Source: Macrostomum lignano | Lineage: Eukaryota | Assembly: GCA_002269645.1 (NCBI GenBank) | Contig: NIVC01003490.1 | Location: 1-64,000 of the forward strand | Direction: 5' to 3' | Length of the DNA: 64,000 nt | Shown here: piece after piece, positions 1 through 63,551 of the stretch | Layout: every line of letters begins with the position of its first letter | Position numbering within the stretch: position 1 is the stretch's first letter | Notes under the pieces: model-generated | The model's input: only the letters and a program-made list of their open reading frames with translations | What the model was told of the DNA's origin: nothing | Databases searched by the model: none | Made by a program: the position numbers and the translations under genes

Positions 1-2115
1 CAGGCAACCCGCTGGCCCTGCGCCGGCCATCTGCGACAAGGCGAGAAGAAAACAGTGCGGTGAGCGACGGCTTCTGCTCTTGCATTCTTAATAGAGAAAC
101 GTACTACTATGAGTACTGTATTCTACAAGCTATCTTTGGTATTCAATGCTAATTGAACAATCCCCAATCTATGATGCAGGCAAGCCGTGCCCCAACGCCA
201 AATGCGATGGCACCCTGGTCCTGCAGGCCTGCCGGGGCCACTCCGGCTACCGGTCACGCATTTCTGGCGCACCTGAACGGCTGCGTCTATTTTCAAGCCA
301 AGGGGGCGCACGACCACCCGGGCCGGATCTGAAGCCGTCCGAAGATTTCCAAAAACAATCGAAAGGCGACTAAAAGGCCGGCGGCCGCTGCTTTAGCGGT
401 GAGTTCTTGAGTTATTTTTTTAAACCCCCCTCTACTCATGTATGCCCGCCACTTCATCCGCTCCTTCACCGCCCCTTCATCCGCCCTTCATACGCATTTC
501 ATCCACCTCTTCATCCGCCCTTTCATCTACCCACTATCTGCCCCTTCATCCGCCCCTTCATCCGCCCCTTCATCCGCCCCTTCACCCGCCCTTTCATCCA
601 CCTCATCACCCGCCCTTTCATCCACCTCATCATCTGTCCCTTCATCCGCCCTTCATACGCATTTCATCCACCTCTTCATCCGCCCTTTCATCTATCCACT
701 ATCTGCCCCTTCATCCGCCCCTTCATTCGCCCCTTCATTCCGCCCCTTCACCCGCCCTTTCATCCACGTCATCATCCGCCCTTTCATCCACCTCATCATC
801 TGTCCCTTCATCCGCCCTTCATACGCATTTCATCCACCTCTTCATCCGCCCTTTCATCTACCCACTATCTGCCCCTTCATCCGCCCCTTCATTCGCCCTT
901 CATCCGCCCCTTCACCCGCCCTTTCATCCACGTCATCATCCGCCCTTTCATCCACCTCATCATCTGTCCCCTTCATCCGCCCTTTCATCCGCCTCATCAT
1001 ATGTCCCTTCATCCGCCTTTTCATTCTGTCCCTTCATCCGCCCTTTCATCCACCTCATCATCCGCCCTTCATCCGCCCTTTCATCCACCTCATCATCCGC
1101 CCTTCATCCGCCCTTTCATCCGCCCCCATCATCGCCCCTTCTCCCGCCCCTTCATCCGCGTATACTTAACGCAAAACAACCCGCCTATAAAATTGTCACT
1201 CCCTCCAATCCAAATATTCCAGCGCCGGCCAGCAGCGACGGTCCTTGACTGCACCGACCAGGTCGACGGTCCGCTGCCTCCGGCCAAGGCGCTCCGCCTG
1301 CAGGCATTCGTGGGGCCCAACTCGGACATGATGCCGCCCCCCTGCTGCTCGCCCTTCTCCTGCGCCTACCAGCCGCCGCACTCAGCCGTCGCCGCTGCCG
1401 CTGCCGCGGCCGCCTACAATCAGCAGCAGGAGCAGCAGACTCAGCACCAGCTGCATCATCAGCAGTGCCAGCTGCCCCAGCATCCGAATTTTTACAGCCC
1501 CGAATCGGCGCCTCATCGCGTACCTGCCCAATACTACAGCGACCTGCAGCAGCAGTCGGCGGCGGCGGCCTACCAACACCAGCATCATCAGCATCATCAC
1601 CAGCAGCTGCATCATCCTGCAGCCGCTCACCACGCCGCCTACCAGCCTCTTCAGACAGTCCGCCGGCCACCCCGCCGCCAGCCGTCCACGGCGGTTTCTC
1701 CCGGCACGCCTCGGACGCCATCAAGAGCAGCCCGGACTCGCCGCTGTGCAGCCCCGCTGGCATGCCGTTCGAGTCTGCAGCTCAGCAGGAGTCGTTCTTC
1801 CCGTTCTGGAGCCCGACGCATCAGATGTTCAGCCAGCAGCAGCAGCCGCACCAGCAGCTCCACCACCAGAGCCAGCATCAGCTACATCATCATCATCAGC
1901 AGCAGCAGCAGTACCAGCATCACTATGAGCAGCAGCAGCAGCAGTGCTCTCAGTCACCCTCTATGACAGCAGCGGCAGCGGCAGCGGCAGCGGCGGCCTG
2001 GGCGAACAGTTGCCAGCCAGTTGCCAGCCAGTATTTCCAGCAGCAGCTGCATGACTACGGCAATCCGGCCACCTACCCGCCGCAGGCGCCGCCAGCAGTT
2101 CTTGGCCAGTCTTGA
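1..2115 (+). CDS. gcm: GCM (glial cells missing) transcription factor, paralog A; 5'-truncated by the window; multiple 1-bp deletions (assembly error or young pseudogene)
   Basis: Exons <1-59 (GT at 60), 180-398 (AG 178-179, GT 399) and 1223-2115 (AG 1221-1222, stop TGA). After restoring single bases the sequence reads [19 protein letters not shown]|[48 protein letters not shown], the GCM DNA-binding domain. The last exon is Q/H/P/A-rich. Exon lengths fit phase only if 5 bases (exon 180-398) and 1 base (last exon) are added. Confidence 0.85.
440..1158. repeat. 12-bp-based tandem array (CTTCATCCGCCC) in GCM-A intron
   Basis: Visible periodicity with a ~165-bp higher-order block; source of ORFs 407/438/442. 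Confidence 0.9.
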
Positions 2116-2804
2116 ACAAAATTGATTGATTTTGTTAATATCTCGAAGATCCAACATGGGATCAAGCAAAATCGGCTGTGATTCTTATTATTTCTATTGT
2201 ACAGTTTTAATGCGATCTGCTTTGGCTAAAACTTCGAGTGTAAATACTATGTTGCGTGATGCGCAGTTTACATAATATCGCATTACATTTTATTTGCTGT
2301 ACATAAAATTGAGAACTGTCTCTATCGCGCCGCTAACTATAACAGCTATATTATACTTTAAATGCAACGCTCTGCTCTGTGTCTCAATTCTAATAACTTC
2401 TAATCATCTGCAACAATCTGTCAATCAATCTTTAACTCAAACCAATCAGAATATTCTTGCACTCGTCAACTATCTTGTAAATAATTGTTTATCTTTTTCA
2501 ACTTATTGGCAAGCTGTAGTGCATGTCTCGCAATGCCGTCATTTTGCTTTCATTAGCTGCCGCCCTCTTAACTATACATGTAGTTACTAATTCCTTCGTA
2601 ATTATTATACAAAAGTACATTAGCTATTTTTAAGAGTTCGATATTTTCTTTTCGAAGCGAGCCGCATGCGATGTGCAAATTAAAAAAACGAAGTGTTTTA
2701 ATTGGTTTTGTCTTTTTAATGACGTCATTTGGTCAATGGAAAAGCTTTCGGATTGATAAAATATGATAAGGTATTAGAGTGAATGAGAGATAGTGTTATG
2801 ATAT

Positions 2805-3035
2805 TGAGTGACATTTGAGATCTGGGAGTGACATTGAAAATCGGAGAGTGACATTTGAGATCTGGGAGTGACATTTGAGATCTGGGAGTGACATTTGAGA
2901 TCTGGGAGTGACATTTGAGATCTGGGAGTGAAATTGGAAATCGGGGAGTGACATAGGAGATCCTGGAGTGACATTGGAAATCGGAGAGTGATATTTGAGA
3001 GCTGAGAGTGACATTTAAAAGCCGGGAGTGACAAG
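2805..3035. repeat. 20-bp tandem array (GAGATCTGGGAGTGACATTT)
   Basis: About 11 copies. Confidence 0.9.
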
Positions 3036-3861
3036 ATTTGTGAAACTTAGTGAAACTTAGTGAAACTGCTCATTATCGTTCATTTATGCTAGCCCTGAGT
3101 TGCATATTAATTCTATAAATATGCTACACTCGTACACTGATGTCTATCAAGATTAAAACTGCAAGATCATGTATTTATTATTAATGATGATCATATTATA
3201 TATAAAATGCCCATATTTACATTTACTGAAGGTCAGTTGCGTTGTGTCCACTATAGTTATAACTCTCACGCACTGTCATCTATGAACAAGATCGATTCTA
3301 TATAATAATAACATGTCAGACGTTCATAAGGCAGATATCAATAGTAATTAAATACTTATATCACCTGCATTCGAACTAGCACTGGAGGTTGCGTCATCCC
3401 AGCGCATCCGAGGCCGCGGCTTTGGGGCAATAACTTGTAGGGGGTTGTTGCATCACTGTGAGCATATAGAAGCATACTTTTATGAGCAGAATTTAGAAAT
3501 ATCGACTGAGGCCATAGACTATGAAAGAGAAAAGGTCTAAGAACAATTTCTAGAGTCACCACTCCCACAACTGCAGGCTGCAAGCAATTAGTCATGTTAT
3601 TATTCAGACAGACATGTTGCAAACTTATTTCTGCCATATTTCAGAAACTCATAAATATCGAAGACTTGTATTGTGGCAAATGACTCTTCTTTCCTTTTTG
3701 ACAAGCGAAGAACAACAAACAGCATTTTTCTATAGTTAGTTTACAAGGAAAATATTTTCTTTAGAGAAACCATGCTTATGAAATGAATGTCGTCAACATA
3801 GACCCTATTCATTCATTTGTGTTGTCTTCCGTGTTGTAGGTTACCGAAACATGTTTCAAGT

Positions 3862-4222
3862 TGGGGATTTCAAAATGGGATTTTAGAATCGGATTTCGAG
3901 TTGGAGATGTCAGAATGGGATTTCAGAATGGGATTTCAGAATGGGATTTCAGAATGGGATTTCAGAATGGGATTTCAGTATGGGATTTCAGAATGGGATT
4001 TCAGAATCGGATTTCAGAATGGGATTTCAGTATGGGATTTCAGAATAGGATTTCAAAATGGGATTTCAGAATGGGATTTCAAAATGGGATTTCAGAATGG
4101 GATTTAAGTATGGGATTTCAAAATGGGATTTCAGAATGTGATTTAAGTATAGGATTTCAGAATGGGATTTCAGAGTGGGATTTCAGAATGGGATTTCAGT
4201 ATGGGATTTCAAAATGGGATTA
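3862..4222. repeat. 13-bp tandem array (ATGGGATTTCAGA)
   Basis: About 27 copies. Confidence 0.9.
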
Positions 4223-4994
4223 TGAGTTAGGGATTCCAGTTGAAGTAGACCCTACAAAGACGGCAAGACCCAGCATAGAATATTCATCAGTATTCGAATG
4301 TTAAGCGACAATTCTGATAAATAATTAGCATTTTTTCGAAACAGAACCACACTATGCAGACAGAGACAAAGAGAGGGACAAAGGACCTGAATAAAGAACA
4401 GGTCACCTGCAGAAATATTTGCTATAGCCTATACAGCCCAGCTATCCGTGTTTCGAGAAGGCAGACTTTAATAAGCATCTCTACAATGGGGATGAAACTT
4501 CATCTAAAAGCATTATACAGCCCGTTCCCGCATCCACCAGCATGCTGGTGCTCAGGGTTTGGGGTGAGTCCGCAGACAGCCCGCAGGACTTCACCGAATC
4601 TGCCCACCCCCCCCCGTTTCCTGACCCAGACTCCAACATCCCATTCTCTCATTCTCATTTGTAAGCAGGTCTACCGAAAAAACTGCTAAGATCTTCTTTT
4701 CTCTACAGAAGGGGGGGGGGCTCAGATCTAGATATCTGGAGAAAGGAACCCCCACTCCTACACTACCGAGTGCATGTGACGTACATGCGCAGATATTGTA
4801 GCGGGTAGAAATTTGGTTGCGTTCAAAAATTGTTTGAAATGTAAAATTATAGTATAATTATTTTGTCGGCCAAGTTTACCTAGTGCTCTCTGTTAAAGAT
4901 TAACGTCTTTAAAAGCAGGTTTATCAACGATATTGCACCACAGACAGGTTTGCCTAAGCTGTACTTTGAGAGTGCGGGACGGGGGTGCGGGGGC

Positions 4995-5209
4995 GGGGGG
5001 TTTCACAAACTCGAAATTTCACAAGATCGAAATTTCACAAGGTCGAAATTTCACAACATTGAAAACTTTAGCAAGGGACTTCATAAGGTCGAAACTTCAC
5101 AACGTAGAAAACGTAGAACCTTGTGAAATTTCGACCTTGTGAAGTTTCGACCCTGTGAAATAATTTACTTTTCGACGTTGTGAAATTTCGACCTTGTGAA
5201 AGCACCCCC
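4995..5209. mobile_element. Foldback/MITE-like palindromic element
   Basis: About 5 forward GGTCGAAATTTCACAA-type units then about 5 inverted TTGTGAAATTTCGACC units; ends GGGGGGTTTCACAA and TTGTGAAAGCACCCCC. Confidence 0.5.
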
Positions 5210-5937
5210 AGGGGCGGAGCCGGGTCCCCAACCACTACCATAGACTATTTGTTGTTTTCTAAGAGTGTCTAAATAAAGTACAGTATTTATTTTTATGGCA
5301 GTCAATCGGGTCTTTGGCCATAGGCAGTTCAATTCAGATTCAATCCATGGTTTAATTTTGCATAATCTGCTTCTAGCTCGTAGTTCATCTAATTCACACA
5401 AGACCAAAATGATAAAAACTTTTTTTTTGATTGAGAAATCGCCTCCGTAAGTCCTGTGGGCGCCCTCATATTTTCTGCAGATGAAGGCTTCAAAATCCTG
5501 TTTTGCAACCGCAGTCACTCCTATGCACCCCAATATCGGTTTGGGGCTTAGAGAACGGGACCGTGGCTTGGAGAATGACAAAGGAAAAATATATTCTTCA
5601 TGCGGGACTAGAGAAAAAACCGAAAGAAACTCTAATTTTGCTTGGAATCTGTTTAGAATCTGAAAAATTCTTATCCAAAACTTCAGCTTCTTCGAGGCCA
5701 GGATGAGGGAGGGAGAGAGCCAGAGAGGAGACTCAAAAGCTTGTTGCTAGGAGCCCTTGGCGCGCTTCCTTAAATTATCCCGCATATAAAGACACGAGTG
5801 TTGCTGTGAATCTTAAGAAATCTGTCTGTCTTTTAGCCGCAACAAAGGCAGGAGTGGGCAGCAGTGAATGTCCAGGCCAACCTTCTGTGGCGATCTTTAG
5901 GTAAAGAATTTAGAATTTGCTAAAACTGGACTAAGAG

Positions 5938-7042
5938 GGTGCCATGTACAATAGAGTGAGTGCCATGTAGAATGAGTGCCATGTAGAATGAGTGCCATGT
6001 AGAATGAGTGCCATGTAGAATGAGTGCCATGTAGAATGAGTGCCATGTAGAATGAGTGCCATGTAGAATGAGTGCCATGTAGAATGAGTGCCATGTAGAA
6101 TGAGTGCCATGTAGAATGAGTGCCATGTAGAATGAGTGCCATGTAGAATGAGTGCCATGTAGAATGAGTTTCATGTAGAATGAGTGCCATGAGTTCCATA
6201 TAGAATGAATGCCATGTAGAATGAGTGCCATGTAGAACGAGTGCCATGTAGAATGAGCGCCATGTAGAATGAGTGCCATGTAGAATGAGTGCCATGTAGA
6301 ATGAGTGCCATGTAGAATGAGTGCCATGTAGAATGAGTGCCATGTAGAATGAGTGCCATGTAGAATGAGTGCCATGTAGAATGAGTGCCATGTAGAATGA
6401 GTTTCATGTAGAATGAGTGCCATGAGTTCCATATAGAATGAATGCCATGTAGAATGAGTGCCATGTAGAACGAGTGCCATGTAGAATGAGCGCCATGTAG
6501 AATGAGTGCCATGTAGAATGAGTGCCATGTAGAATGAGTGCCATGTAGAATGAGTGCCATGTAGAATGAGCGCCATGTAGAATGAGTGCCATGTAGAATG
6601 AGTGCCATGTAGAATGAGTTTCATGTAGAATGAGTGCCATGAGTTCCATATAGAATGAATGCCATGTAGAATGAGTGCCATGTAGAACGAGTGCCATGTA
6701 GAATGAGCGCCATGTAGAATGAATGCCATGTAGAATGAGTGCCATGTAGAATGAGTGCCATGTAGAATGAGCGCCATGTAGAATGAGCGCCATGTAGAAT
6801 GAATGCCATGTAGAATGAGTGCCATGTAGAATGAGCGCCATGTAGAATGAGCGCCATGTAGAATGAGTGCCATGTAGAATGAGTGCCATGTAGAATGAGC
6901 GCCATGTAGAATGAGCGCCATGTAGAATGAGTGCCATGTAGAATGAGTGCCATGTAGAATGAGCGCCATGTAGAATGAGTGCCATGTAGAATGAGTGCCA
7001 TGTAGAATGAGCGCCATGTAGAATGAGTGCCATGTGGAATGA
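5938..7042. repeat. 16-bp tandem array (TGCCATGTAGAATGAG)
   Basis: About 68 copies; a variant block recurs at about 6170, 6400 and 6620. Confidence 0.95.
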
Positions 7043-7900
7043 GCGCTGCTTAAAATGGAACAGGGCATGGATAATAAAACTGGAATTAATGTCCTTTTTA
7101 GCTGTCCAAGTCCCAAAGGAATGAACACTAATCCTATTTTAATCACATGTTCCTCTGTTTCTGCAGTTCAGCAAAATCAACAACTGCAGGGTGAATGAGC
7201 TATAGCGTTTGATTTATTTCATCTTTTGCAGCAGAATGACAACAATGAAGACAATAAATTTGCTCGAGATCGCTAAAAAGTGATAATTCAACACGGGGGT
7301 TGGATGGGGGTTGGCGGCAAAAGCAGACTTGCGGGCAGCTTGTTGCAGTAAGGCTGAAAACAGATGGATTATCATCGGGAACAGAATCCTCAAGCCCTCA
7401 TTTATCCCGCACGATTCTGCCGGCACAATGATTCCATTGTTTTCATTTCGACCATATATAAATTGAAAGATGAAGTAAGAGGAGCCTCCAAGCCTTCGTG
7501 AGCAGTAAAACCCACTACCCATATTCAGAGGAATCCCTTGCAGATCACAACTGTTTGACTGTTGATCCTCAGTGGATTTCAGAACTCCCCACCTCTCTTT
7601 CGCTTCACCGACCGAAATTTTTTCTTCTCTCTCTCTCTCCAGCCTTGCCCCTCTGTATTGCAGTCTACGCACACACCGAAAATAATTTTATAAACTGTTG
7701 TTTAGTTGATGTTGCATTGTCACATTGTCTGTTCTGCCACATTCATTTAGTCGTGTCTTGGTTGTTTTCTTAAGTTCTAAGAAACAGCTATAGCTATTAA
7801 CTGGTCTGGGAGTGAATTCTTGCTGACAGCAACAAAAACAGCGTCAGAAGAAGTAGTTTGTAGTGTACAAAGACAATTTTACAGACTTCGGGGTGATCCC

Positions 7901-8378
7901 AACACTGCGCGCTTATAGCACTGGGCGCTTATATAGCACTGCGCGCTTATATAACACTGCGCGCCTATAACACTGCGCGCTCATATAACACTGCGCGCCT
8001 ATAACACTGCGCGCTTATATAACACTGCGCGCTTATATAGCACTGCGCGCTTATATAACACTGCGCGCTTATATAACACTGCGCGCCTATAACACTGCGC
8101 GCCTATAACACTGCGCGCTAATATAACACTGCGCGCTTATATAGCACTGCGCGCTTGTATAACTCTACGCGCCTATAACACTAGGCGCTTATAACACTGT
8201 GCGCTCATATAACACTGCGCGCTTATATAACACTGCGCGCTTATATAGCACTGCGCGCTAATATAACACTGCGCGCTTATATAACACTGCGCGCTTATAT
8301 AACACTGCGCGCTTATATAACACTGCGCGCTTATATAGCACTGCGCGCTTATATAACACTGCGCGCTTATATAACACT
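7901..8378. repeat. 18-20-bp tandem array (TATATAACACTGCGCGCT)
   Basis: About 24 copies. Confidence 0.9.
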
Positions 8379-9185
8379 AGGCTCTTCTGCTGCGTACCCT
8401 CTCCCATATGAGCAGGCACAACCGATGGATTGGGTCAGCGAACAAAAAATTTGCTGGAAGCCGCCGCTCTGATGGCAATCTGATGGGAATGTCAGACGGG
8501 AAGGCCGACGGTCCGCCACGCGACATATTCCGATATCCCATCGCATTGCGCAATGGCGAAGGCCAGAGTTCTGATTTCGAACTGGAGTGAATGCAGCCTG
8601 AGGCGCTGACTTCTCAGCTCAACTGTCTTTCTCTTGTTCTCAAAACACGAAACAATATTTCTATGTAGGAGAAAGCTGACCCCCCAGCAGTTGTCCCAAA
8701 TTTCTCCCAGCTCTGCAGGTGTCTCCTTTGCATGCGCGAGTCATCTGATTAACATGGCCGGACTTCCTGATTGATGAGGCGCACGAGTGAGGCTGGGTGG
8801 AGGATGGAGGCGGGGAATATCAAAGCATTTTCCAAAGTGGCCCATTGTAATTGCGCCACTGACGTCAGTTCGAACTCGAAGAACTCCCGAGCTTCTCAGC
8901 TTACATACACCTTACTGAATACTGTTGGATTCCATATTGTCTGACAAATTAACTACATCAATCGAACCCAACCAACGTGTATTGAGAAATTGTGCAACAA
9001 GAGAGAACTACTGCTCAATGTTGTGCAAGGCCATGGTTAGTTATCTACATGTCAGGCAGTCTGACAGCGGCGTCCAGACTCTGAGATTCTGATCTACTAG
9101 TAAAAGCAAGCATCTATTCTACGTAGAAATATGCTAGGAAGTTTGACGCTCCTTTCATTTTCATTTTATAGCTGGGCCAGCCGCC

Positions 9186-10103
9186 AGATACTATAAATAG
9201 GGCGCACTAGTAGCGACCCTAGTAGCGACCCCAGACACTATAAATAGGGCGCACTAGTAGCGACCCTAGACACTATAAATAGGGCGCACTAGTAGCGACC
9301 CTAGTAGCGACCCCAGACACTATAAATAGGGCGCACTAGTAGCGACCCTAGACACTATAAATAGGGCGCACTAGTTAGCGACCCCAGACACTATAAATAG
9401 GGCGCACTAGTTAGCGACCCTAGACACTATAAATAGGGCGCACTAGTAGCGACCCTAGTAGCGACCCCAGACACTATAAATAGGGCGCACTAGTAGCGAC
9501 CCTAGACACTATAAATAGGGCGCACTAGTTAGCGACCCTAGACACTATAAATAGGGCGCACTAGTTAGCGGTCCTAGACACTATAAAAAGGGCGCACTAG
9601 TAGCTGTCCTAGACACTATAAATAGGGCGCACTAGTAGCGACCCTAGACACTATAAATAGGGCGCACTAGTTAGCGACCCTAGACACTATAAATAGGGCG
9701 CACTGGTAGCGACCCCAGACACTATAAATAGGGCGCACTAGTTAGCGACCCTAGACACTATAAATAGGGCGCACTGGTAGCGACCCCAGATACTATAAAT
9801 AGGGCGCACTAGTAGCGGTCCTAGACACTATAAATAGGGCGCACTAGTAGCGACCCCAGACACTATAAATAGGGCGCACTAGTAGCGGTCCTAGACACTA
9901 CAAATAGAGCGCCCTAGTAGCGGTCCTAGACACTACAAATAGAGCGCACTAGTAGCGGTCCTAGACACTATAAATAGGGCGCACTAGTAGCGACCCCAGA
10001 CACTATAAATAGGGCGCGCTAGTAGCGTTCCTAGACACTAATTAGAGCGCACTAGTAGCGGTCCTATTCCTAGACACTACAAATAAAGCGCACTAGTAGC
10101 GGC
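9186..10103. repeat. 35-36-bp tandem array (CTAGACACTATAAATAGGGCGCACTAGTAGCGACC)
   Basis: About 25 copies. Confidence 0.9.
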
Positions 10104-10529
10104 GCCAGGTACACTCAGTGAATTCTGTCGCAAAAATAAATATGGTCATACAATCACCTTCTGATAACGCACACAATAGTCTTCATTAAAAGTCAGATCC
10201 CCGCTCCCCAGTCCAGTTTCTAGGGTGCGTAAACAAAGTACAAAAAGCATCTTCAAGAATGTCGGGCCAAAGTCGAAGTTGGAGACACGAATTGTTGCAG
10301 AGTTCGGGGCAAGGAATCCCATGATTTATGGCAGTGCCAATCCGAGTACAGGAAATCAGAGCAATTGCTTTCTGTCGGCTTCAATTTCGGCAGTATTTGG
10401 CAATTTTACTGCACCGAGGCGTGACTTTCTTGAATGCCTGCTCCCCAATTTGCTAGTGCGGGGATGCGTGTGCCTTGGCATTTTTAATATCCCATCTCTG
10501 ACTCCATCTCTGTGTCTCAGATTCTGAAA

Positions 10530-12058
10530 TTTCACATCTCTGACTCTCACATCTCTGACTCTCACATCTCTGAACTTTCACATCTCTGACTCTCTCACAT
10601 CTCTGACTCTCACATCTCTCACTCTCACATCTCTGACTCTCACATCTCTGACTCTAACATCTCTGACTCTAACATCTCTGACTCTCACATCTCTGACTCT
10701 CACATCTCTGACTCTCACATCTCTGACTCTCACATCTCTGACTCTCACATCTCTGACTCTCACATCTCTGACTCTCACATCTCTGACTCTCACATCTCTG
10801 ACTCTCACATCTCTGACTCTCACATCTCTCACTCTCACATCTCTGACTCTAACATCTCTGACTCTCACATCTCTCACTCTCACATCTCTCACTCTAACAT
10901 CTCTCACTCTCACATCTCTCACTCTCACATCTCTCACTCTCACATCTCTGACTCTCACATCTCTCACTCTAACATCTCTCACTCTCACATCTCTGACTCT
11001 CACATCTCTGACTCTCACATCTCTGACTCTCACATCTCTCACTCTAACATCTCTCACTCTCACATATCTGACTCTCACATCTCTGACTCTAACATCTCTG
11101 ACTCTAACATCTCTGACTCTCACATCTCTGACTCTAACATCTCTGACTCTCACATCTCTCACTCTCACATCTCTCACTCTAACATCTCTGACTCTCACAT
11201 CTCTCACTCTCACATCTCTGACTCTCTCACATCTCTCACTCTCACATCTCTCACTCTAACATCTCTCACTCTCACATCTCTGACTCTCACATCTCTCACT
11301 CTCACATCTCTGACTCTCACATCTCTGACTCTAACATCTCTGACTCTAACATCTCTGACTCTCACATCTCTGACTCTCACATCTCTGACTCTCACATCTC
11401 TGACTCTCACATCTCTGACTCTCACATCTCTGACTCTCACATCTCTGACTCTCACATCTTTGACTCTCACATCTCTGACTCTCACATCTCTGACTCTCAC
11501 ATCTCTCACTCTCACATCTCTGACTCTCACATCTCTGACTCTCACATCTCTGACTCTCACATCTCTCACTCTCACATCTCTGACTCTCACATCTCTGACT
11601 CTCACATCTCTCACTCTCACATCTCTGACTCGAACATCTCTGACTCTAACATCTCTGACTCTCACATCTCTCACTCTAACATCTCTCACTCTCACATCTC
11701 TGACTCTCACATCTCTCACTCTCACATATCTGACTCTCACATCTCTGACTCTCACATCTCTGACTCTCACATCTCTGACTCTCACATCTCTGACTCTCAC
11801 ATCTCTGACTCTCACATCTCTGACTCTCACATCTCTGACTCTCACATCTCTCACTCTCACATCTCTGACTCTCACATCTCCCACTCTCACATCTCTCACT
11901 CTCACATCTCTGACTCTAACATCTCTGACTCTCACATCTCTGACTCTCTCACATCTCTGAACTTCACATCTCTGACTCTCACATCTCTGACTCTCTCACA
12001 TCTCTGAACTTCACATCTCTGACTCTCTCACATCTCTGAACTTCACATCTCTGACTCT
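10530..12058. repeat. 15-bp tandem array (ACTCTCACATCTCTG)
   Basis: About 100 copies; source of the VRDVR and LTLTS pseudo-ORFs. Confidence 0.95.
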
Positions 12059-13515
12059 TACCCTCTGACTAACATTGTGCTTATTTTCCTTCAAACTTCA
12101 ATAAAACTTCAGTCAGTTGTGAAAGATTTATTCAACTTTATTAAAATGAGACCAAGATTGTAGAAATCGGTTTATCTGTTCCGAAATTATTGATAATTCT
12201 GTGCAGATAGTAGGGTGTCTGGTGCTGGTACACCCAGGACCAATCTCGTATTTGGGGGAATGTCACCATCCATGTCTCCAGAGTTCCTATTTTTAAGAAT
12301 CATGTGGGCTTGGTCTTTTAAATCCAAATATTTTAAGTTGATAAAGTTTTATAACAGCTAGAATGAATTGAAGGGATAAACGTTTCTAGTCCAGATGATT
12401 TAGATGTTGTCCATGTGCCAGCCGATCCCTAAAGCGTCTAATTTTCAAGTTTAATCAGTCGAGAAGCTTGTGATAGCTAATGCAATTGTTATTTTTTTAG
12501 TGTACGACTCTTGACTCGGCTCTTCTACCCTCTCATTATGCTGTTGAAGAGTGGAAAAAGAGGAACCTGCTTTTAAGAGGCAGGGTAACGTGTCAGGCGG
12601 ACATTGTGGTGTGTGTGTGCAGATGGAGAAGTCAGCCTCCTCTAAGTCTCAACCATGCGGTAATGCGCAGTGTAAAGTTGCCTCATCAGCGGACAAAAGC
12701 TTGGGCGCACGTGCTGGCGCCCCCCCATCCATATTTTGCTGCATAATTAATGCAGATAAAATAATTAGTGCCTGTATGAGTGTGTTAGGAGACCTGGCTG
12801 TGCAATGCAATGTGAGCCATGCCATATTAGTCAAACTACGAGTATTTGGCCAACAGCTCCAGTACCGATCAACAGATGAGGATTTTTGTCATCCAAAAAG
12901 CAGAATCTGCCAGCGGCGAAGTCTGAACAACAACGACAAAAGTTTCTATTTGTTGGCGCAAAGCATATCATTATATTGCAACAGTATTGGCACGCGGCTA
13001 ACACATAAGTATGCAGGAACTTTATAGAGCGGCGAAGAAACTCACGAAAACTTCTGAACTGATGTGTGCTAAAATTTACCCAATAACAGAAGGTATATTC
13101 AATCACTTTGAGTTCAACAGGTCCCAAAACAATGCGTTTTCTGAGAATTTTTTGACGCTTTGAACAGTCACGGAATGGAACCAACGAGAGTCAGGTGGCG
13201 CGAGAGTCAATTACACGTAGGTAAGGCTTGTGTGGTGCTGATTAGAACGCCTGTCGACTTGATTTGCAGATATTGTCAAAAGTTATATATAAAACTACAA
13301 AGTTTATCAAAAAATGGTATGGTCACTGAGTTCGCTTCATGCGCCTGCGACTCTCCGTCCCGGATCGGGCTCTGAGAATATTGTTAGTCAGACAAGAGTA
13401 GGGGTTGGCCATCCTTTATTGGTAGCCCAGCTGTTGATTACTTCTCGAGGCAATCCATCATTTCGATGTGTGTTTCCGTATGAAAGGCAAGGTGAAAAAT
13501 TAACTGTCTCAGAGA

Positions 13516-16500
13516 TCATCCCATGAACAGCGGTCGTGTCGGCGAAGTCCGGCCATAGAGGTGGTGGGCGGCCGGGCCGTGGCCATCGGCTTCCGCGTCG
13601 GCAATGAGGGGCAGCAAGACGCTCGCACTGCTGATGCCGGGTGCGGCACTGCCTCCGGGATTTGCTTGGAACAGACCGTCTTGATAGTACTGCTGCTGCT
13701 GCTGCTGCTGCTGATGTTGTTGATGAAGCTGCGGACGCTGGATTGGGATCGGCTCCTCATCCTCTAGCTGAAACTGCTGCCTAGTCAGGTGCGGCCTGAG
13801 CTCCGCCAGCAACGCCGACTCTCCGTCCGAGTTATAAGTCGTTCCGCTGCCGCCGCCGTTGGACTGCCAGAAGGCGAAGAACGGATCGGCGAAGTCTGTC
13901 ACCGGATCAACGATCGGTGGCGACTCAGAAAGTGGCAACTGCTGCTGCTGCTGCTGGTGCTGCTGGTGCTGACGATGCAACAGCATCTGGTGGTACTGCT
14001 GGTGCTGCTGGTGCTGCTGGTGTTGCTGGTGCTGCTGGTGTTGCCCAGTCACTGCAGATGGCAGAGCGATTCTCTCGCCAATTTGCATTGGAGCTGGCAG
14101 CCGCTGTTGCTGCTGTTGCTGCTGATAATGATGATGAATCTCGTGCTGCTGATGCTGCAGCTGCTGATGGAGCTGGTGCTGCTCCAACTGCTCACGATGC
14201 TCAGCTGGCGCTGAAGCATAGAATCCAACCGATGCTCCCAAGCCCGGATACGGAAGCATTCCGATGTACTGCTGCTGCTGCTGCTGCTGCCGTGAGGTGC
14301 TGCCTCGGGTCCTCCGACGAAAGCCGCCGCCGCAACTACCGCGGCCGCCGCCGAAGCCACCGCCCCAGTTGAATCCGGCCGGTGAAGCAGCTGCTGCTGT
14401 AGGTGGCTCGCCTGACGCTGAGCCGTTGGTGCTGGGCGGCAGCGGCACTGGTCGATGTCGACGCGATGATATGGGCAAATTAGTGACTGATAATATTGAT
14501 GATGCTGATGCTGCTGATAATGGGCCTGCTGGTGGTTGATGGTTGATGGGGCTGTAGGCCTGCGCTTGATTTTCGCCTTCGGCTGTCGCTGTTTCTGTGG
14601 CTTCACGGCGTTCTTGACAATCAGCTGCTGCTGTCTCTGTACCTGTTGATGCTGCGGCTGCTGTTGCTGTCTCTGTGGCTTCTTGGCCTTCTTAACAATC
14701 GGTTGTTGTTGTTGCGCAAATTGATGCTGCACCTGCTCCCGCCGCTGAACCTAGAATAGGTTGCGAGTTCGATTCCTATCTCAAGGTAGGTAGAATCTCA
14801 TGCGATCCTTTTCTCCCTGTCTCTTCCTGTCTCTCTTCCCGCCTTTCCCTCTCCCTCCCTCAATGTCCCTGTCTCCCTCTTGCACTGTCAAAGTCTCCCA
14901 CTCTCCCCTCACCACTGCGGGTACGCCGCTCTTCTTCAACAGTCTCATCCGCCTTCGAATGTCTTCAGCCGGCTTCAGATCCGGCGCCGGGTGGTCGTGC
15001 GCCCCCTTGGCTTGAAAATAGACGCAGCCGTTCAGGTGGCGCCAGAAATGCGTGACCGGGTAGCCGGAGTGGCCACGACAGGCCTGAAGGACCAGGGTGC
15101 CGTCGCATTTGGCGTTGGGGCACGGCTTGCCTGGAATGAAAGCAAAATCAGCGCGTCGGAAACGGGCTTTTGTGTCACAGCTGCCAGCTTTCAGCAGCTC
15201 ATGATTGTCAATGTGTCCGGTTTGTGAAGTGTCCGGTTTGTGAAGTGTCCGGTTTGTGAAGTGTCCGGTTTGTGAAGTGTCCGGTTTGTGAAGTGTCCGG
15301 TTTGTGAAGTGTCCGGTTTGCGAAGTGTCCGGTTTGTGAAGTGTCCGGTTTGTGAAGTGTCCAGTTTGCGAAGTGTCCGATTTGTGAAGTGTCCGGTTTG
15401 TGAAGTGTCCGGTTTATGAAGTGTCCGGTTTGCGAAGTGACCAGTTTGCGAAGTGTCCGGTTTGTGAAGTGTCCGGTTTGTGAAGTGTCCAGTTTGTGAA
15501 GTGTCCGGTTTGTGAAGTGTCCGGTTTGTGAAGTGACCAGTTTGTGAAGTGACCAGTTTGTGAAGTGTCCGGTTTATGAAGAGTTCGGTTTGTGAAGTTT
15601 GTGACCAGTTTGTGAATTGTCCAGTTTTTGAAGTGTCCGGTTTGTGAAGTGTCCGGTTTGTGAAGTGACCAGTTTGTGAAGTGTCCGGTTTGTGAAGTGT
15701 CCATTTTGTGAAGTGACCAGTTTGTGAAGTGTCCGGTTTGTGAAGTGTCCGGTTTGTGAAGCGTCCAATTAGTGAACCCATTCAACATTGCTGATAGACG
15801 GAAGCGTGAACTGACATCCAGAAACATTTTTCATCATCGGTGAAGCAGCAATGCTCTCACGACTGGAGCATTTCCCAGATCGGGGCCGGAAATGATTTTG
15901 TTAGCTCAAATTTCAACAAAATTCCAGCCGGCTACCGGGCGGGGCCCCGGTGACTATCTGCTCACTGTAGAGGAGAAATGAGTGAGGAAAACTAAGAAGA
16001 AAATTGCCCCCAGCCGAGAAGATGGTGGGCGGGGCACCAGCGTTGCTGCTGAAGCGCAGTGCCATCCCGTTAGGCCAGGTAACCGGTAATTACCCTGCGT
16101 GATTCCCAAGCCCTTGCAGGCTCATGGGGGGAGGCGATAGATGGGGTGTCGAATCTCTCGCTGAAATGGGAACCAGCTAATTGGGGTCGCGCTGAAAGCT
16201 GAGGGGGGAGAGCAGATATTGCAGCCATTCCTTCAGAGATAAACACTATCTATTGACTATTTTTTGGGGGTTGCTAAGCTGTTGCCAGCTTGCGCGAACT
16301 CTATGAGTCCGTGAATTGGTTCATAGGCGGTTTGCTTGCGGCTACAGTTTCACGATTTGATGGAGCTGATAGCTTATGAAATTGGTGCTTAAGAAATGCT
16401 AGGTCTAGTCTATAGACTGGCTTCAAGATCTACTAGGTCTAGTCTATAGACTGGCTTTAAAATCGACTAGATCTAGTCTATAGACTGGCTTTAAGATCTA

Positions 16501-19146
16501 CCAGATCTAGTCTAAAGACTGGCTTCAAGATCTACTAGGTCTAGTCTATAGACTGGCTTCAAGATCTACTAGATCTAGTCTATAGACTGGCTTCAAGATC
16601 TACTAGATCTAGTCTAAAGACTGGCTTCAAGATCTACTAGGTCTAGTCTATAGACTGGCTTCAAGATCTACTAGGTCTAGTCTATAGACTGGCTTTAAAA
16701 TCTACTAGATCTAGTCTATAGACTGGCTTTAAGATCTACTAGATCTAGTCTAAAGACTGGCTTCAAGATCTACTAGGTCTAGTCTATAGACTGGCTTCAA
16801 GATCTACTATAGGTCTAGTCTATAGACTGGCTTCAAGATCTACTAGATCTAGTCTATAGACTGGCTTCAAGATCTACTAGATCTATTCTAAAGACTGGCT
16901 TCAAGATCTACTAGGTCTAGTCTATAGACTGGCTTCAAGATCTACTAGGTCTAGTCTATAGACTGGCTTCAAGATCTACTAGGTCTAGTCTATAGACTGG
17001 CTTCAAGATCTACTAGGTCTAGTCTATAGACTGGCTTCAAGATCTACTAGGTCTAGTCTATAGACTGGCTTCAAGATCTACTAGGTCTAGTCTATAGACT
17101 GGCTTCAAGATCTACTAGGTCTAGTCTATAGACTGGCTTTAAGATCTACTAGATCTAGTCTAAAGACTGGCTTCAAGATCTACTAGATCTATTCTAAAGA
17201 CTGGCTTCAAGATCTACTAGGTCTAGTCTATAGACTGGCTTCAAGATCTACTAGGTCTAGTCTATAGACTGGCTTCAAGATCTAGTAGATCTATTCTATA
17301 GACTGGCTTCAAGATCTACTAGATCTAGTCCATAGTCTGGCCTCAAGATCTACGATTCTACTAGATCTAGTCTATACATAAAAGTCAATCAATTGAGATC
17401 TTTTTGTGTTGCCTAATATGAATATAAATATTTTTTTATATTTTAAACATTCTACTCATCATAAACTAGCAAAATTTGTCATTTTTATCTAAATCGTTGT
17501 ATTATCGAATCGGAACAACCGCAGATAGTCGAGACAGTGGGCCTATAAAACTTTCATTTTTATTAATAATCCTTGTAATTTTTGAATCGCTCTTTACTTG
17601 ACCAGATTCGATCAGTGTTGTGCGCTCTCCTGTACATCCAGCTGGTAGATGTGGTGCGCGCCATTTCAGATACAAATGAGTTGAAAATATTGTTAATCTT
17701 GTATTATTTTTTGAGAAAAGTGGTGGAAAATAGATTAGATCTAAAATGAATCAGATTTGGAACAGGAAACGAGAGAGCAGGGGAAGGGAGCGAAGACAGA
17801 CGGGAAGGGAGCACAATGGAGTGGGAAGGGAGCGGAGACAGACGGGAAGGGGTGGAATGGAGCGGGAAGGGAGCGGAGACAGACGGGAAGGGGCGGAATG
17901 GAGCGGGAAGGGAGCGGAATGGAGCGGGAAGGGGCGGAATGGAGCGGGAAGGGCTGAAGTGGAGTGGGAAGGGAGCGGAATGGAGCGGGAAGGGGCGGAA
18001 TGGAGCGAGAAGGGAGGGGAATGGAGCGGGGAGGGGCGGAATGGAGCGGGGAGGGAGCGGAAGGGAGCGGGAAGGGGCGGAATGGAGCGGGGAGGGAGCG
18101 GAAGAGAGCGGAAAGGGAGCGGAAGGGAGCGAGAAGGGAGCGAGAAGGGAGTGGAATGGAGCGAGAAGAGGCGGAATGGAGCGGGAAAGGGCGGAATGGA
18201 GCGGGAAGGGAGCGGAATTGAGCGGGAAGGGGAGGAATGGAGCGGGAAGGGAGCGGAATTGAGCGGGAAGGGAGCGGAATTGAGCGGGAAGGGGCGGAAT
18301 TGAGCGGGAAGGGAGCGGAATTGAGCGGGAAGGGAGGAATGGAGCGGAAAGGGAGCGGAATTGAGCGGGAAGGGAGCGGAATTGAGCGGGAAGGGGCGGA
18401 ATTGAGCGGGAAGGGGCGGAATGGAGCGGGAAGGGCGGAATGGAGCGGGAAGGGGCGGAATTGAGCGGGAAGGGAGGCGGAAAGACAGAAGCCGTCGCTT
18501 ACCGCACTGTTTTCTTCTCGCCTTGTCGCAGATGGCCGGCCGCAGGGCCAGCGGGTTGCCGCTGGGGGCCAGGCAGCCGCGGCTGCAGACCAGCACGCCG
18601 AGGCAGGACTTCTTCAAGATGCTCACATTGTGATTGTTGGTGTTCCGCATCGCCCAGCCGCTGGTGTGCCGTTTGGCCTCGTCCTGCCTGCCTCCATAGG
18701 CGTAGCGGCAGGCTCCGTCTGGCCACAGCTGGAAGCTGTCGGGCACTTGCGGCTGGAGATTGCGCGGCAGTTAGGGAGGAGACGACATGCAGTGTTTTTC
18801 AGCTTTGGTGCTTAATGCATGCGCTCTCTATTATTATCTACTCGTATATATACACGCACAGGCAGATGTCTACAGAGGGAAGCAGACGCACATGTGGGTA
18901 TCTATCAATATATACCAACTACACTCAGACCGCAGCAGGCAAATACTTTCTCAGGGTCATACGGGCAGGCACAAGTGGAAGGGTCAGGCGGCGCGCTCTC
19001 ACTGTTGGAAGCTGCGGGTCGTTGACGTCCCAGCGTCGGTCAGGGTCCAGCAGAGTCTGCAGTTTCTGCTTCTGCTTCAGTTGCTGTTGCTGCTCCTGCT
19101 CCTCCTGCTGCTCCAAAAGCAGCTGCTGCTTGCTGCTTGCAGGCAT
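13516..19146 (-). CDS. gcm: GCM transcription factor, paralog B (~615 aa, 4 coding exons, one apparent 1-bp deletion near 14290)
   Basis: Exons 19146-19003, 18752-18503, 15130-14913 and 14750-13516, all GT-AG with compatible phases. Contains WDVND...WPDG...[29 protein letters not shown]...[13 protein letters not shown]...C...[14 protein letters not shown]...[10 protein letters not shown], the canonical GCM domain. The last exon is 1235 nt (one short of a multiple of 3) and switches frame at a CAG run. Confidence 0.92.
15211..15775. repeat. 16-bp tandem array (GAAGTGTCCGGTTTGT), GCM-B intron 2
   Basis: About 35 copies. Confidence 0.9.
16398..17378. repeat. 34-bp tandem array with internal palindromes (CTAGTCTATAGACTGGCTTCAAGATCTACTAGGT), GCM-B intron 2
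   Basis: About 28 copies. Confidence 0.95.
17765..18478. repeat. ~20-bp purine-rich array (GGAATGGAGCGGGAAGGGGC), GCM-B intron 2
   Basis: About 35 degenerate copies, starting ~25 nt after the donor. Confidence 0.9.
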
Positions 19147-23980: not shown

Positions 23981-24644
23981 CTTCCGATTCCCAGAAATAA
24001 TGGATCGCAGCGAAGCAGCCCCCTAATTACGAAGTGTAACACTTTTCTGCAGGCAGAATCGAAGCCTGACCGGAATCTGGGTCTCGTCATCAACATGGGG
24101 GCCCACGCTGTGAGGTCACGTCACCACTTCTAATAATAGTTTAGCGATGAAAGAATCCCAACTTTTTTTATCCTCAAGCTTCTCAGCTCCTTTGTTTTCT
24201 TGCCTCTAACCAGGCGCACAGAATAGAACTTTAATCCCAGTGCTTTATATGCCGATGCTTCTGATAGCTGCCGGCTAATATTATGACAACATGCGCTTTA
24301 TAGGGCAGCGAGTAAATTGATGGTCTCCGCGACCCAGCAACTCCAGCTCCATTGACTGAAAAAGTGAAAATATATTCTATTTTCAATTACACGGCTTCTG
24401 CTTCTAGGGGCAGGCTGAAGAAAAAAGCGAAATAATAGCCTTGGGCTCATTACAAATTCTGCGCGGGCGTGTCTGCAGACAGTGAAGGCAGTTGTCTGCG
24501 GCTGGGACGCCGGCGGGGCGGCAGGCAGCGCGTGTCTGAGGAGCCTTCGAATCTGAACAATTCAATGCCGACTAGCGGGCGTGACCTTGGCGCTTGGGAA
24601 CAAGACGGTTGAGTGATTTACTGATAGCTAGACAGACAGACAGA

Positions 24645-25578
<934 letters not shown>

Positions 25579-26724
25579 GATCTACCTGAGCTACTGGGTG
25601 GGCAAGACTCATCACCTAGATCAAGATCGTTGAGTAGCTAGCAGAAGACTCAACAGGATAATCAATTATTCCTATTTTTAGCTCGAACAGAACAGCTGCA
25701 ATGTTGAGGCCGGACTCGCGGAACGGGGAGCAGAGGCGCCACAGGTTTCTGTTGCTCTGGGTTGGGGATTTATAGTGGGATCATAAATTTATGTCTTATC
25801 TCTGTAAACTGCTTACTTACCTATTCAGCAAGATTGCGATCATCGTCAGCCCGTCCCATCTCAAACCCCAACTCTGTCGCGTGTTGTTGCCAAGGTGGCA
25901 GTCGAGCTCAAGAAAAGCCCAGAGTCAAGAGCAGACTTTTTTCTCTTCCTCTGTCCGCCATTCTTCATATTTTTTGAGATTCCAAGTGCGGGTGGGCTGG
26001 ATTGCGACAAATAGCTTTTTTATGATTCTAACAAAAAACCTCAACTGTCTTAGAACAGGAATAACCTCACTGGATCTGCATCTTCTCCCTCAGCCATCTT
26101 CATTGTGTCTTGGTTGCCGACCGGGTCCGCCATTTTTGCCGCAAAATTTGAGATGCGAATCTGCTGCTAGCGTGTGCAACTCGAATACACAGTTTAAATA
26201 GGAAGTGCGGATTACCGGCAGATCTACGAGCGAGATTAACTTTGGTTGCCAAGGATAATGAGAGAGCATTCTTGGTGCCTAAGCCGGATTCTCTGACGAC
26301 AATTCCATGACTTCATTAGCAACCAGTTCAGGATCCGTGCGTGTCATCCCCCGGTCCTAACCTCAAACAAAGCAAAGGGCTTCTGAGTAGAATTTTCCAC
26401 TAATACCATTTGTATGGAAGAAAATTTGTCACGCGTTCCAACCGCACTACTTGTTTAGTAGAGGGCTTAGAGTTTATTGCCTTTATTGCAATCTTATAAA
26501 AAAAACAAATCAAACACATTTTCATTGTTCAGTTGTTTTGCGTGTTGGGATTTGCTATATTTTGAGTTGCTAACTCACAACTTCATCTTCTTAATAGCAG
26601 GAAAGTTTTCAAAGATCAAATAAAATACACTGTCAACTCTGCTCAAACCGTTCAATCGGTAAACGCGACAGTTTTTATGTTTGCAGGGTAAATTAAAACT
26701 CAGGGATCAGAAAAAGGATCAAAG

Positions 26725-27100: not shown

Positions 27101-27174
27101 TAGAGAGAGCGGGACCAAGTTAAAAGTTTGTATTGACGCTCAGTTCTTTCAGCCCCCAAGTGCAGCAGCCATTC

Positions 27175-29936
27175 TCAGACGAGCTCGCAGATGACGGCCT
27201 CCACAGGGGTGGCGCAGTCCACAGATCGCATGCTGTACGGCGGGGTCCTGTCCACCGTGACGCAGTGCACGCTGGTGTTGGCGGCCGAGGCCCAGACGTA
27301 CTGGCTGGGGGTCAGGCTGCCCTCGCCGCTGACCCACTGGTACTTGGAGTCGCTGGTGTTGTAGCGAGCACCGATTAGGTAGACGGAGAAGTCTGAAAGT
27401 TCGAGTATTTGGATCGGGATCAGGATCGGGATCAGGATCGGGATCAGGATCGGGATCAGGATCGGGATCAGGATCGGGATCAGGATCGGGATCAGGATCG
27501 GGATCAGGATCGGGATCAGGATCGGGATCAGGATCGGGATCAGGATCGGGATCAGGATCGGGATCAGGATCGGGATCAGGATCGGGATCAGGATCGGGAT
27601 CAGGATCGGGATCAGGATCGGGATCAGGATCGGGATCAGGATCGGGATCAGGATCGGGATCAGGATCGGGATCAGGATCGGGATCAGGATCGGGATCAGG
27701 ATCGGGATCAGGATCGGGATCAGGATCGGGATCAGGATCGGGATCAGGATCGGGATCAGGATCGGGATCAGGATCGGGATCAGGATCGGGATCAGGATCG
27801 GGATCAGGATCGGGATCAGGATCGGGATCAGGATCGGGATCAGGATCGGGATCAGGATCGGGATCAGGATCGGGATCAGGATCGGGATCAGGATCGGGAT
27901 CAGGATCGGGATCAGGATCGGGATCAGGATCGGGATCAGGATCGGGATCAGGATCGGGATCAGGATCGGGATCAGGATCGGGATCAGGATCGGGATCAGG
28001 ATCGGGATCAGGATCGGGATCAGGATCGGGATCAGGATCGGGATCAGGATCGGGATCAGGATCGGGATCAGGATCGGGATCAGGATCGGGATCAGGATCG
28101 GGATCAGGATCGGGATCAGGATCGGGATCAGGATCGGGATCAGGATCGGGATCAGGATCGGGATCAGGATCGGGATCAGGATCGGGATCAGGATCGGGAT
28201 CAGGATCGGGATCAGGATCGGGATCAGGATCGGGATCAGGATCGGGATCAGGATCGGGATCAGGATCGGGATCAGGATCGGGATCAGGATCGGGATCAGG
28301 ATCGGGATCAGGATCGGGATCAGGATCGGGATCAGGATCGGGATCAGGATGCACCCACCAGTATAAGACTTGAACAGGTCCGCAGTGATGTTGAACTCGT
28401 TAGGCATGGAGGAGCCGCCCATGCGGTTATCGTAGGACACCAGATCCGCGTAGCCCATCGACTGGCACTGCGTGCGGCCGCTGTCGAAAGTCCGCCCGCC
28501 GCCGCCCCAGAAAGCCAAATAGGGTGCCTTTGGAGCCGTTGTTGGTGCTGGCGTTGCGGCGCCGGTTGTAGCGCCGACAGTTGTGGCGCCGACGGTTGTG
28601 GCGCCAGCGCCAGCTACGGTTGTTGTTGATGCGGCGGAATCTGCAGTCTGCCTTACGAACAGCGTCTGCAGTGATGCGGGCGGCGGATAAATAATTTGAG
28701 AGCGCACCTTTTTTCTTCTTTAATTGACTATTAGGTCTTGAAAATTTAAAGTGCTTAGAGATAAACTATTTGATTATATCATCCCTTCTATAGATTAGAT
28801 TATCCCCGATAGTTTTGAAGTATTCTCCTAATTTAAAGTATATTTTGGGATCATTTAACTATACGAGATTTGATAGTCCCTCCAGCTCACCTGTCCCTCC
28901 AGCTCACCCGTCCCTCCAGCTCACCTGTCCCTCCAGCTCACCTGTCCCTCCAGCTCACCTGTCCCTCCAGCTCACCTGTCCCTCCAGCTCACCTGTCCCT
29001 CCAGCTCACCTGTCCCTCCAGCTCACCTGTCCCTCCAGCTCACCTGTCCCTCCAGCTCACCTGTCCCTCCAGCTCACCTGTCCCTCCAGCTCACCTGTCC
29101 CTCCAGCTCACCTGTCCCTCCAGCTCACCTGTCCCTCCAGCTCACCTGTCCCTCCAGCTCACCTGTCCCTCCAGCTCACCTGTCCCTCCAGCTCACCTGT
29201 CCCTCCAGCTCACCTGTCCCTCCAGCTCACCTGTCCCTCCAGCTCACCTGTCCCTCCAGCTCACCTGTCCCTCCAGCTCACCTGTCCCTCCAGCTCACCT
29301 GTCCCTCCAGCTCACCTGTCCCTCCAGCTCACCTGTCCCTCCAGCTCACCTGTCCCTCCAGCTCACCTGTCCCTCCAGCTCACCTGTCCCTCCAGCTCAC
29401 CTGTCCCTCCAGCTCACCTGTCCCTCCAGCTCACCTGTCCCTCCAGCTCACCTGTCCCTCCAGCTCACCTGTCCCTCCAGCTCACCTGTCCCTCCAGCTC
29501 ACCTGTCCCTCCAGCTCACCTGTCCCTCCAGCTCACCTGTCCCTCCAGCTCACCTGTCCCTCCAGCTCACCTGTCCCTCCAGCTCACCTGTCCCTCCAGC
29601 TCATTTGTCCCTCCAGCTCACCTGTCCAAGCCATCCGCCGCTCCCGGCAGTCCAATTCAGCCGATAGCCGATGCCGCAGGCTCCATCAGCTGCGGAGAAG
29701 GCGAAGGCGGCGCAGTCGCTGGCATCGGCAGCAGAGGAGGCGGTCAGGCAGCGGGCTCCGCACTCCAGGCGGGTGGCAGCCGGAGTTCGAGTCGGCGGAT
29801 CGGCAAAGACGGCCAGTTCGTCGGCGTGGTAGACAAAACTGCCGCTTGGCACAGCGGCATCGGCAGCGGGGAACAAGAAAAAGCAGACTGAGCAGCCGCT
29901 CAGAAGCAGAAGAGAGAGTCTAACAGGGTGAAACAT
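27175..29936 (-). CDS. Secreted PAN/Apple-like + Thr/Ala-rich linker + C-type lectin-like protein (~279 aa)
   Basis: Exons 29936-29622, 28665-28359 and 27392-27175 (sum 840 nt, phases 0 and 1). Signal-like N-terminus MFHPVRLSLLLLSGCSVCFFLFPAADA; LECGARC...CAAFAFS...C (PAN-like); TTVGATT linker; C-terminal ...QCQSMG..LVS...YLIG...YQWVSG...W...HCV...DC...VICE (CTLD pattern). An alternative exon-2 acceptor at 28708 is purine-rich and less likely. Confidence 0.78.
27411..28350. repeat. Perfect 12-bp array (GGATCGGGATCA) filling lectin intron 2
   Basis: About 78 copies, no variants seen. Confidence 0.97.
28875..29627. repeat. 17-bp array (sense CAGGTGAGCTGGAGGGA) in lectin intron 1, containing the splice donor
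   Basis: About 44 copies. Confidence 0.97.

Positions 29937-31372: not shown

Positions 31373-41440
<10,068 letters not shown>

Positions 41441-59421: not shown

Positions 59422-63551
<4,130 letters not shown>

Follow-up and report, generated by a model that had tools for sequence, protein, structure and literature searches.

How do two neighbouring genes come to encode nearly the same stretch of a DNA-binding domain, down to most of its synonymous sites, when little else in them can be aligned? The question is raised by the start of a 64,000-nucleotide (nt) stretch of DNA from the flatworm Macrostomum lignano (assembly GCA_002269645.1, contig NIVC01003490.1, positions 1 to 64,000; hereafter the window), in which two genes of the GCM family, GCM-A on the forward (+) and GCM-B on the reverse (-) strand, form a convergent pair. 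They are placed tail-to-tail and their stop codons are 11,400 nt apart, in agreement with a preliminary description of this DNA (about 11.4 kb). We consider it probable that they are an older paralog pair in which interlocus gene conversion has overwritten part of the GCM domain, and that the gaps in the GCM-A sequence are consensus errors. The evidence base is one draft sequence and three noisy protein models from UniProt.

A sharply bounded tract of near-identity

BLASTN detected two inverted matches between the genes, one in exon 3 (A 177-345 against B 15133-14962, E 1.7e-73) and one in exon 2 (A 3-81 against B 18560-18482, E 6e-33). The coding tract that could be compared comprises 219 nt or 73 codons, with 58 nt from exon 2 and 161 nt from exon 3. 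It contains four synonymous substitutions (GAT/GAC, CTG/CTT, TGC/TGT and CGG/CGT, at A 208, 223, 232 and 235) and no non-synonymous one, giving an overall difference of 1.8% (4/219), identity at 45 of the 49 synonymous sites and a synonymous divergence (dS) of 0.086. Without constraint, the probability that all four substitutions would be synonymous is ~0.003. All four fall within 28 nt (A 208-235 against B 15102-15075; p ~0.005 on synonymous sites), and identity around this cluster is perfect over 58 nt in exon 2 and over 102 nt in exon 3. The clustering of the differences suggests a mosaic conversion tract.

The edges of the tract are abrupt. On the intron side, the first 17 nt of intron 2 match at 16 positions, with a loose match continuing to ~21 nt, so that only the first 17-21 nt of the GCM-B intron (18502-18482) resemble the GCM-A intron at all. 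At the 3' edge, the first mismatch follows GATCTGAAGCCG at A 338; within a few bases identity drops to roughly half, and past this position only a faint (S/A)ED resemblance is seen. For the remainder of intron 2, which is 119 nt long in A and 3,372 nt long in B, and for intron 3, local alignment was no better than with shuffled sequences. The best BLASTP match between the last exons was a five-residue motif, FFPFW/FFAFW (E 1.6), and at the nucleotide level these exons matched only in CAG-repeat low complexity. A motif of the FFPFW/FFAFW type was found in none of 121 other GCM proteins searched. The substitutions in exon 3, the run of identity into the intron with its abrupt end after GATCTGAAGCCG, and last exons that cannot be aligned except for short motifs had all been reported in the preliminary description and were reproduced here.

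Identity that is bounded, that includes synonymous sites and that lies between unalignable flanks is the pattern of a conversion tract. GCM-A and GCM-B share the same exon phases, but their N-termini, introns and C-terminal regions are unrelated, which suggests a duplication older than the tract.

Extent of the homogenised part

Only the 3' boundary of the tract lies in the window, since GCM-A is cut by the window start and the 5' part of the gene falls outside. Its upstream part was therefore read from A0A1I8FHY8, an M. lignano protein model that carries the GCM-A-specific exon 3 tail and exon 4 start (the A-type model). The start of the domain in this model, MAELQQQVSASKRSWDINDSKLAIADRHDSFQLWPND..., is identical to GCM-B at 12 of 24 residues, and the next five codons (YGGRQ in B) differ strongly when shifted frames of the model are read against the B DNA. 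Downstream of these, starting at about codon D72 of B (near 18683), even out-of-frame stretches of A0A1I8FHY8 match alternative frames of B, which requires nucleotide identity there. The homogenised part would thus extend approximately from D72 as far as P192 and take in the C-terminal two-thirds of the domain, ending two codons short of the end of the Pfam match. The earlier claim that the DNA-binding domains as a whole are homogenised would hold for these two-thirds; going by the A-type model, the first third differs between the genes.

These limits bear on whether any exchange is needed. Selection at the nucleotide level, acting through codon usage, splicing enhancers or RNA structure, could keep synonymous sites alike by itself, and the tract does lie where the domain is most conserved. 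Such selection would have to account for the near-complete identity of synonymous sites (45 of 49) and for 16 of 17 intron bases, while the adjoining part of the same domain has diverged even in protein; we regard this explanation as hardly credible.

A second way to dispense with exchange is to ascribe the identity to assembly or polishing, either because reads of one paralog went into building or correcting the DNA-binding-domain exons of the other or because an inverted chimeric read produced the copy at a contig end. The published PacBio assemblies of M. lignano are fragmented, polyploid assemblies may hold collapsed or mosaic sequence, and 93% of read pairs multi-map in the Mlig_3_7 assembly (PMC10733133). 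In addition, the error density of the GCM-A copy, which lies at the window start, is unusual. It nevertheless has its own intron, exon 3 tail and last exon as well as four private synonymous differences, and a fold-back would have copied the introns too. The same exon 3 peptide moreover occurs in both an A-type (A0A1I8FHY8) and a B-type (A0A1I8GP91) context among other M. lignano sequences. An artefact of this kind is very unlikely, if slightly less so than selection on the nucleotide sequence.

Gene conversion as the proposed mechanism

In the mechanism that we propose, ectopic gene conversion would have overwritten roughly the last two-thirds of the part of the gene that codes for the GCM DNA-binding domain. 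Exchange would have been limited to the only regions that had kept enough similarity for pairing: the 3' part of exon 2, with 17-21 nt of intron, and most of exon 3. The unrelated intron between these identical segments excludes one continuous tract, so that at least two tracts are needed. The clustered differences probably reflect more than one event, or patchy repair of heteroduplex, and purifying selection would have acted on both copies after conversion. The interlocus conversion put forward in the preliminary description is thus supported by a sharply bounded tract of low dS between unrelated flanks, but it covers only part of the domain. Since the tract edges lie close to the ends of exons, conversion mediated by complementary DNA (cDNA) was also considered. 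For the exon 2 tract we reject it, given that the identity there extends over 17-21 nt of the intron.

The genome of M. lignano is neopolyploid, and 69.6% of the length of the Mlig_3_7 assembly is in three paralogous copies that differ by 1.1% in coding sequence (PMC10733133). The difference within the tract (1.8%) is close to this divergence of the duplicated subgenome copies, implying that the last exchange was recent. The same figure, being of the same order as the copy divergence, could also be read as the trace of one event around the whole-genome duplication, in the form of a single conversion or of a partial duplication that pasted in the exons of the DNA-binding domain, with no homogenisation going on since; only one time point is at hand. 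An event of this kind is hard to reconcile with the unrelated intron 2, which splits the identical segments and calls for at least two tracts, and the clustered substitutions fit patchy or repeated exchange better. We consider a single event unlikely.

Conversion could also be a continuing process. Repeated, exon-confined conversion may actively keep the DNA-contacting core identical, with crossover between the inverted exons occasionally flipping the ~15-kb interval between them. If so, the flip would swap the unrelated C-terminal effector regions between two promoters and N-termini, and would represent a structural polymorphism that reshuffles transcription-factor modules. We offer this as a speculation that is somewhat less likely than a single event.

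Frame breaks in GCM-A

The preliminary description had set aside the 1-bp gaps between the two genes. This is not justified, since the frame of GCM-A as written changes five times in the first 360 nt, with six missing bases, and again near 1650. Compared with GCM-B, GCM-A lacks single bases after 21, 249, 269 and 321; compared with A0A1I8FHY8, it lacks two bases in an A-run near 352-356. The gap after A 21 (the fourth of its kind), the deficit in the A-run and one frame change in the last exon of each gene are additions to what had been described. In GCM-B, this change lies somewhere within ~14290-14400. A small intron was examined as its cause and rejected, as the sole GT..AG candidate (~51 nt) keeps the frame, and the change is treated here as an indel.

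Several observations bear on the nature of these breaks. In both genes all of them are deletions. In the tract, three out of four single-base deletions fall in short homopolymer runs; the two-base deficit does so too. Exon 3 of GCM-A is intact in A0A1I8FHY8, where its protein is identical to that of GCM-B. The B-type models A0A1I8F775 and A0A1I8GP91, in turn, are frameshifted where GCM-B in the window is intact. Breaks thus occur in different places in different sequences, indicating that they are private to each. Restoring the missing bases gives GCM-A exon phases identical to those of GCM-B, and long open frames flank every break, with no stop codon in the true frame. Taken together with the substitutions being synonymous only, the private breaks, the restored phases, the open frames and the homopolymer context indicate that the single-base gaps in GCM-A are most likely long-read consensus errors rather than decay, as judged from the sequences at hand.

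The opposite reading would make this copy of GCM-A a real pseudogene, one of about three post-duplication copies, decaying during rediploidisation. In favour of this are the loss of six bases, spread over five sites of the first 360 nt, and the further frame change in exon 4; the other genes in the window are free of frame breaks, redundancy exists in a genome of which most is present in about three copies, and the intact A-type model A0A1I8FHY8 could come from a different copy. Natural decay is normally richer in substitutions, however, than a copy with five indel sites and no non-synonymous change (against four synonymous ones). The introns of GCM-A are kept, its breaks are absent from A0A1I8FHY8, and similar frame noise appears at other places in B-type and A-type models from another assembly. 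The open frames on both sides of each break without stops in the true frame, the exact exon phases obtained on restoring the bases, and breaks that are all deletions, mostly in short homopolymer runs, also speak against decay. A decaying copy therefore seems improbable to us, and we keep to consensus errors as the explanation of the gaps.

Some points weigh against the account given here of an old pair, partly overwritten by conversion and blurred by consensus errors. Five error sites in 360 nt is an odd concentration, far above the rate elsewhere in the window, where a RAD54-like gene, for example, has three long exons and zero frame breaks; the window start may be a contig end with low coverage, which would explain the concentration, although this is a guess. 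The position of the 5' edge of the tract is our inference from a protein model that is riddled with frameshifts and possibly derives from a different copy of the locus. Four substitutions cannot firmly separate a single recent conversion from repeated conversion. Finally, the comparison is one of A and B as they stand in the window and of three protein models.

GCM family membership and gene models

GCM-B is complete in the window, with four exons and introns that are all of the GT..AG type. Its product matches the Pfam family PF03615 (GCM) with E 1.5e-64 and 216.6 bits, against a curated cut-off of 25, over residues 53-190 and profile positions 2-139 of 140. Alignment with the DNA-binding domain of mouse GCMa (1ODH) extends over 157 residues (E 1.7e-56); every mouse Cys and all His columns but one, in the N-terminal part, are conserved in GCM-B, HDH included. 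Only the last 73 codons of the GCM domain of GCM-A fall inside the window; they match GCM-B once the missing bases are allowed for, and the A-type model A0A1I8FHY8 itself carries PF03615. We therefore predict that both genes encode GCM-type DNA-binding transcription factors.

The top protein matches were three M. lignano UniProt entries named "GCM domain-containing protein". A0A1I8F775 is 100% identical to exon 4 of GCM-B over 123 residues. After these entries, the best matches were GCM proteins of ticks, molluscs, annelids and insects, with no more than ~57-66% identity in the domain. Protein searches with the GCM sequences found no other Macrostomum GCM, a protein search with A0A1I8FHY8 returned no further M. 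lignano A-type protein, and none of the papers searched linked Macrostomum lignano with glial cells missing.

Table 1 Features of the GCM locus and of other genes in the window
Feature	Position	Strand	Remarks
Start of the window, Macrostomum lignano (19.1 kb)	1-19146		Spliced eukaryotic genes; ~40% minisatellite
GCM-A exon 2, 3' end (DNA-binding domain)	1-59	+	From position 3 equal to B 18560-18503, bar one missing base after 21
GCM-A intron 2	60-179	+	GT..AG; beyond the first 17 nt unrelated to B intron 2
GCM-A exon 3	180-398	+	Near-identical tract at 180-337; tail encodes ..NNRKATKRPAAAALA
GCM-A intron 3	399-1222	+	Mostly CCGCCCCTTCAT minisatellite (446-1159)
GCM-A last exon	1223-2115	+	Q/H/A-rich; stop 2113-2115; one frame change near 1650; unalignable to B last exon
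Spacer between the GCM-A and GCM-B stop codons	2116-13515	.	Six minisatellite blocks reported by Tandem Repeats Finder (TRF)
GCM-B last exon	13516-14750	-	Basic K/R-rich stretch, then Q/H-rich region; stop 13518-13516
GCM-B exon 3	14913-15130	-	Near-identical tract 15130-14970; Pfam GCM match ends ~14955
GCM-B intron 2 (3,372 nt)	15131-18502	-	Minisatellites 15213-15766, 16399-17353, 17781-18484
GCM-B exon 2	18503-18752	-	GCM domain start; 18560-18503 identical to A
GCM-B exon 1	19003-19146	-	ATG at 19146; Q/E-rich N-terminus and WDVND domain start
Exon of 41 residues in model A0A1I8GP91	20360-20238	-	Joins lectin-like gene to GCM-B exon 2
C-type-lectin-like gene	27149-28707	-	Upstream of GCM-B
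MORN-repeat-like gene	37761-41440	-	Suggested; open reading frame translations by eye only
SLC17-like transporter gene	47227-53667	+	Suggested; open reading frame translations by eye only
RAD54-like DNA repair helicase gene	59422-63512	-	Long intact exons; introns full of (AGAC/TGTC)n and 22-mer minisatellites

Minisatellites and neighbouring genes

The minisatellite load of the window (1-64000) is extreme, with roughly 35 distinct arrays at a TRF score >= 200. They include (GATA)240 at 24623-25581, a perfect repeat of a 12-mer (78 copies) at 27411-28350 and a 16-mer repeated 178 times at 32951-35806. Many of the arrays read as long spurious open reading frames. A prokaryote-style reading of the region by open reading frames was rejected, the genes here being spliced and eukaryotic. 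The spacer between the GCM genes contains no recognisable gene, tRNA or Rfam RNA, and tRNA and Rfam scans of the whole window gave zero matches.

One 10-mer, CCGCCCCTTC, occurs in 17 copies in the window against 0.09 expected by chance. All copies lie in the minisatellites at 446-1159 (+) and 17781-18484 (-), on the sense strand of both GCM genes. These arrays begin 21-47 nt after a converted exon, in intron 3 of GCM-A and in intron 2 of GCM-B; they may be related to each other, or may mark recombination-prone sequence beside the tracts.

Upstream of GCM-B, the B-type model A0A1I8GP91 fuses the C-type-lectin-like gene to exon 2 of GCM-B by way of the 41-residue exon listed in Table 1. This fusion is probably a chimera of gene prediction.

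Predicted function and implications

GCM proteins recognise 5'-ATGCGGGT-3' or variants of it, and the domain is the only conserved region of the family (PMC2172107). From its likeness to 1ODH, GCM-B is expected to bind the GCM octamer. The preliminary description had presented a common DNA specificity of the two factors as a result of conversion. Any two GCM proteins would be expected to share their specificity, and the family-wide recognition of this site suffices, so that conversion is not needed to explain it. The K/R-rich stretch that follows the domain in B and the Q/H-rich tails of both proteins may be localisation and activation regions.

The locus provides a small, clean example of partial concerted evolution within the domain of a developmental transcription factor. 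It also has practical consequences. Gene trees built from the GCM domain will misdate the M. lignano duplication, probes or RNA interference (RNAi) triggers derived from the domain will target the two genes alike, which means that paralog-specific reagents should come from the N- or C-terminal regions, and automated gene models at the locus are frameshifted or chimeric. What is known of GCM function and of gene conversion is left unchanged by the case, and a specialist would not be surprised by it.

Comparison with known systems

Mouse GCMa/Gcm1 (1ODH) and the M. lignano protein are alike in the domain and share nothing related outside it. The Drosophila pair gcm and gcm2, to which the preliminary description had likened the locus, has been attributed to a recent duplication (PMC2172107). 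Like M. lignano, Drosophila has two GCM genes, gcm/glide and gcm2/glide2, that arose by local duplication; the parallel stands as an analogy between neighbouring paralogs and no further, as the organism here is a neopolyploid flatworm. The fly genes are reportedly chromosomal neighbours, a result that is attributed to Kammerer and Giangrande (2001) and to Alfonso and Jones (2002). The M. lignano duplication differs in being independent and in having a domain core that is nearly identical at synonymous sites, whereas the domains of fly gcm and gcm2 are clearly diverged; we know of no conversion described for the fly pair.

Closer in kind are the textbook cases of interlocus conversion between inverted or tandem duplicates, such as Drosophila Hsp70Aa/Ab, the Drosophila Amy duplicates, the human gamma-globin genes and the palindromes of the Y chromosome. 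These pairs likewise combine sharply bounded near-identity and low synonymous divergence inside the tract with diverged flanks, and the inverted orientation makes exchange possible without deletion of the spacer. The M. lignano pair differs from them in being known from one draft sequence and in that the rest of both genes is unalignable. It differs also in the tract itself, which is part of one domain, split over two exons with an unrelated intron between them.

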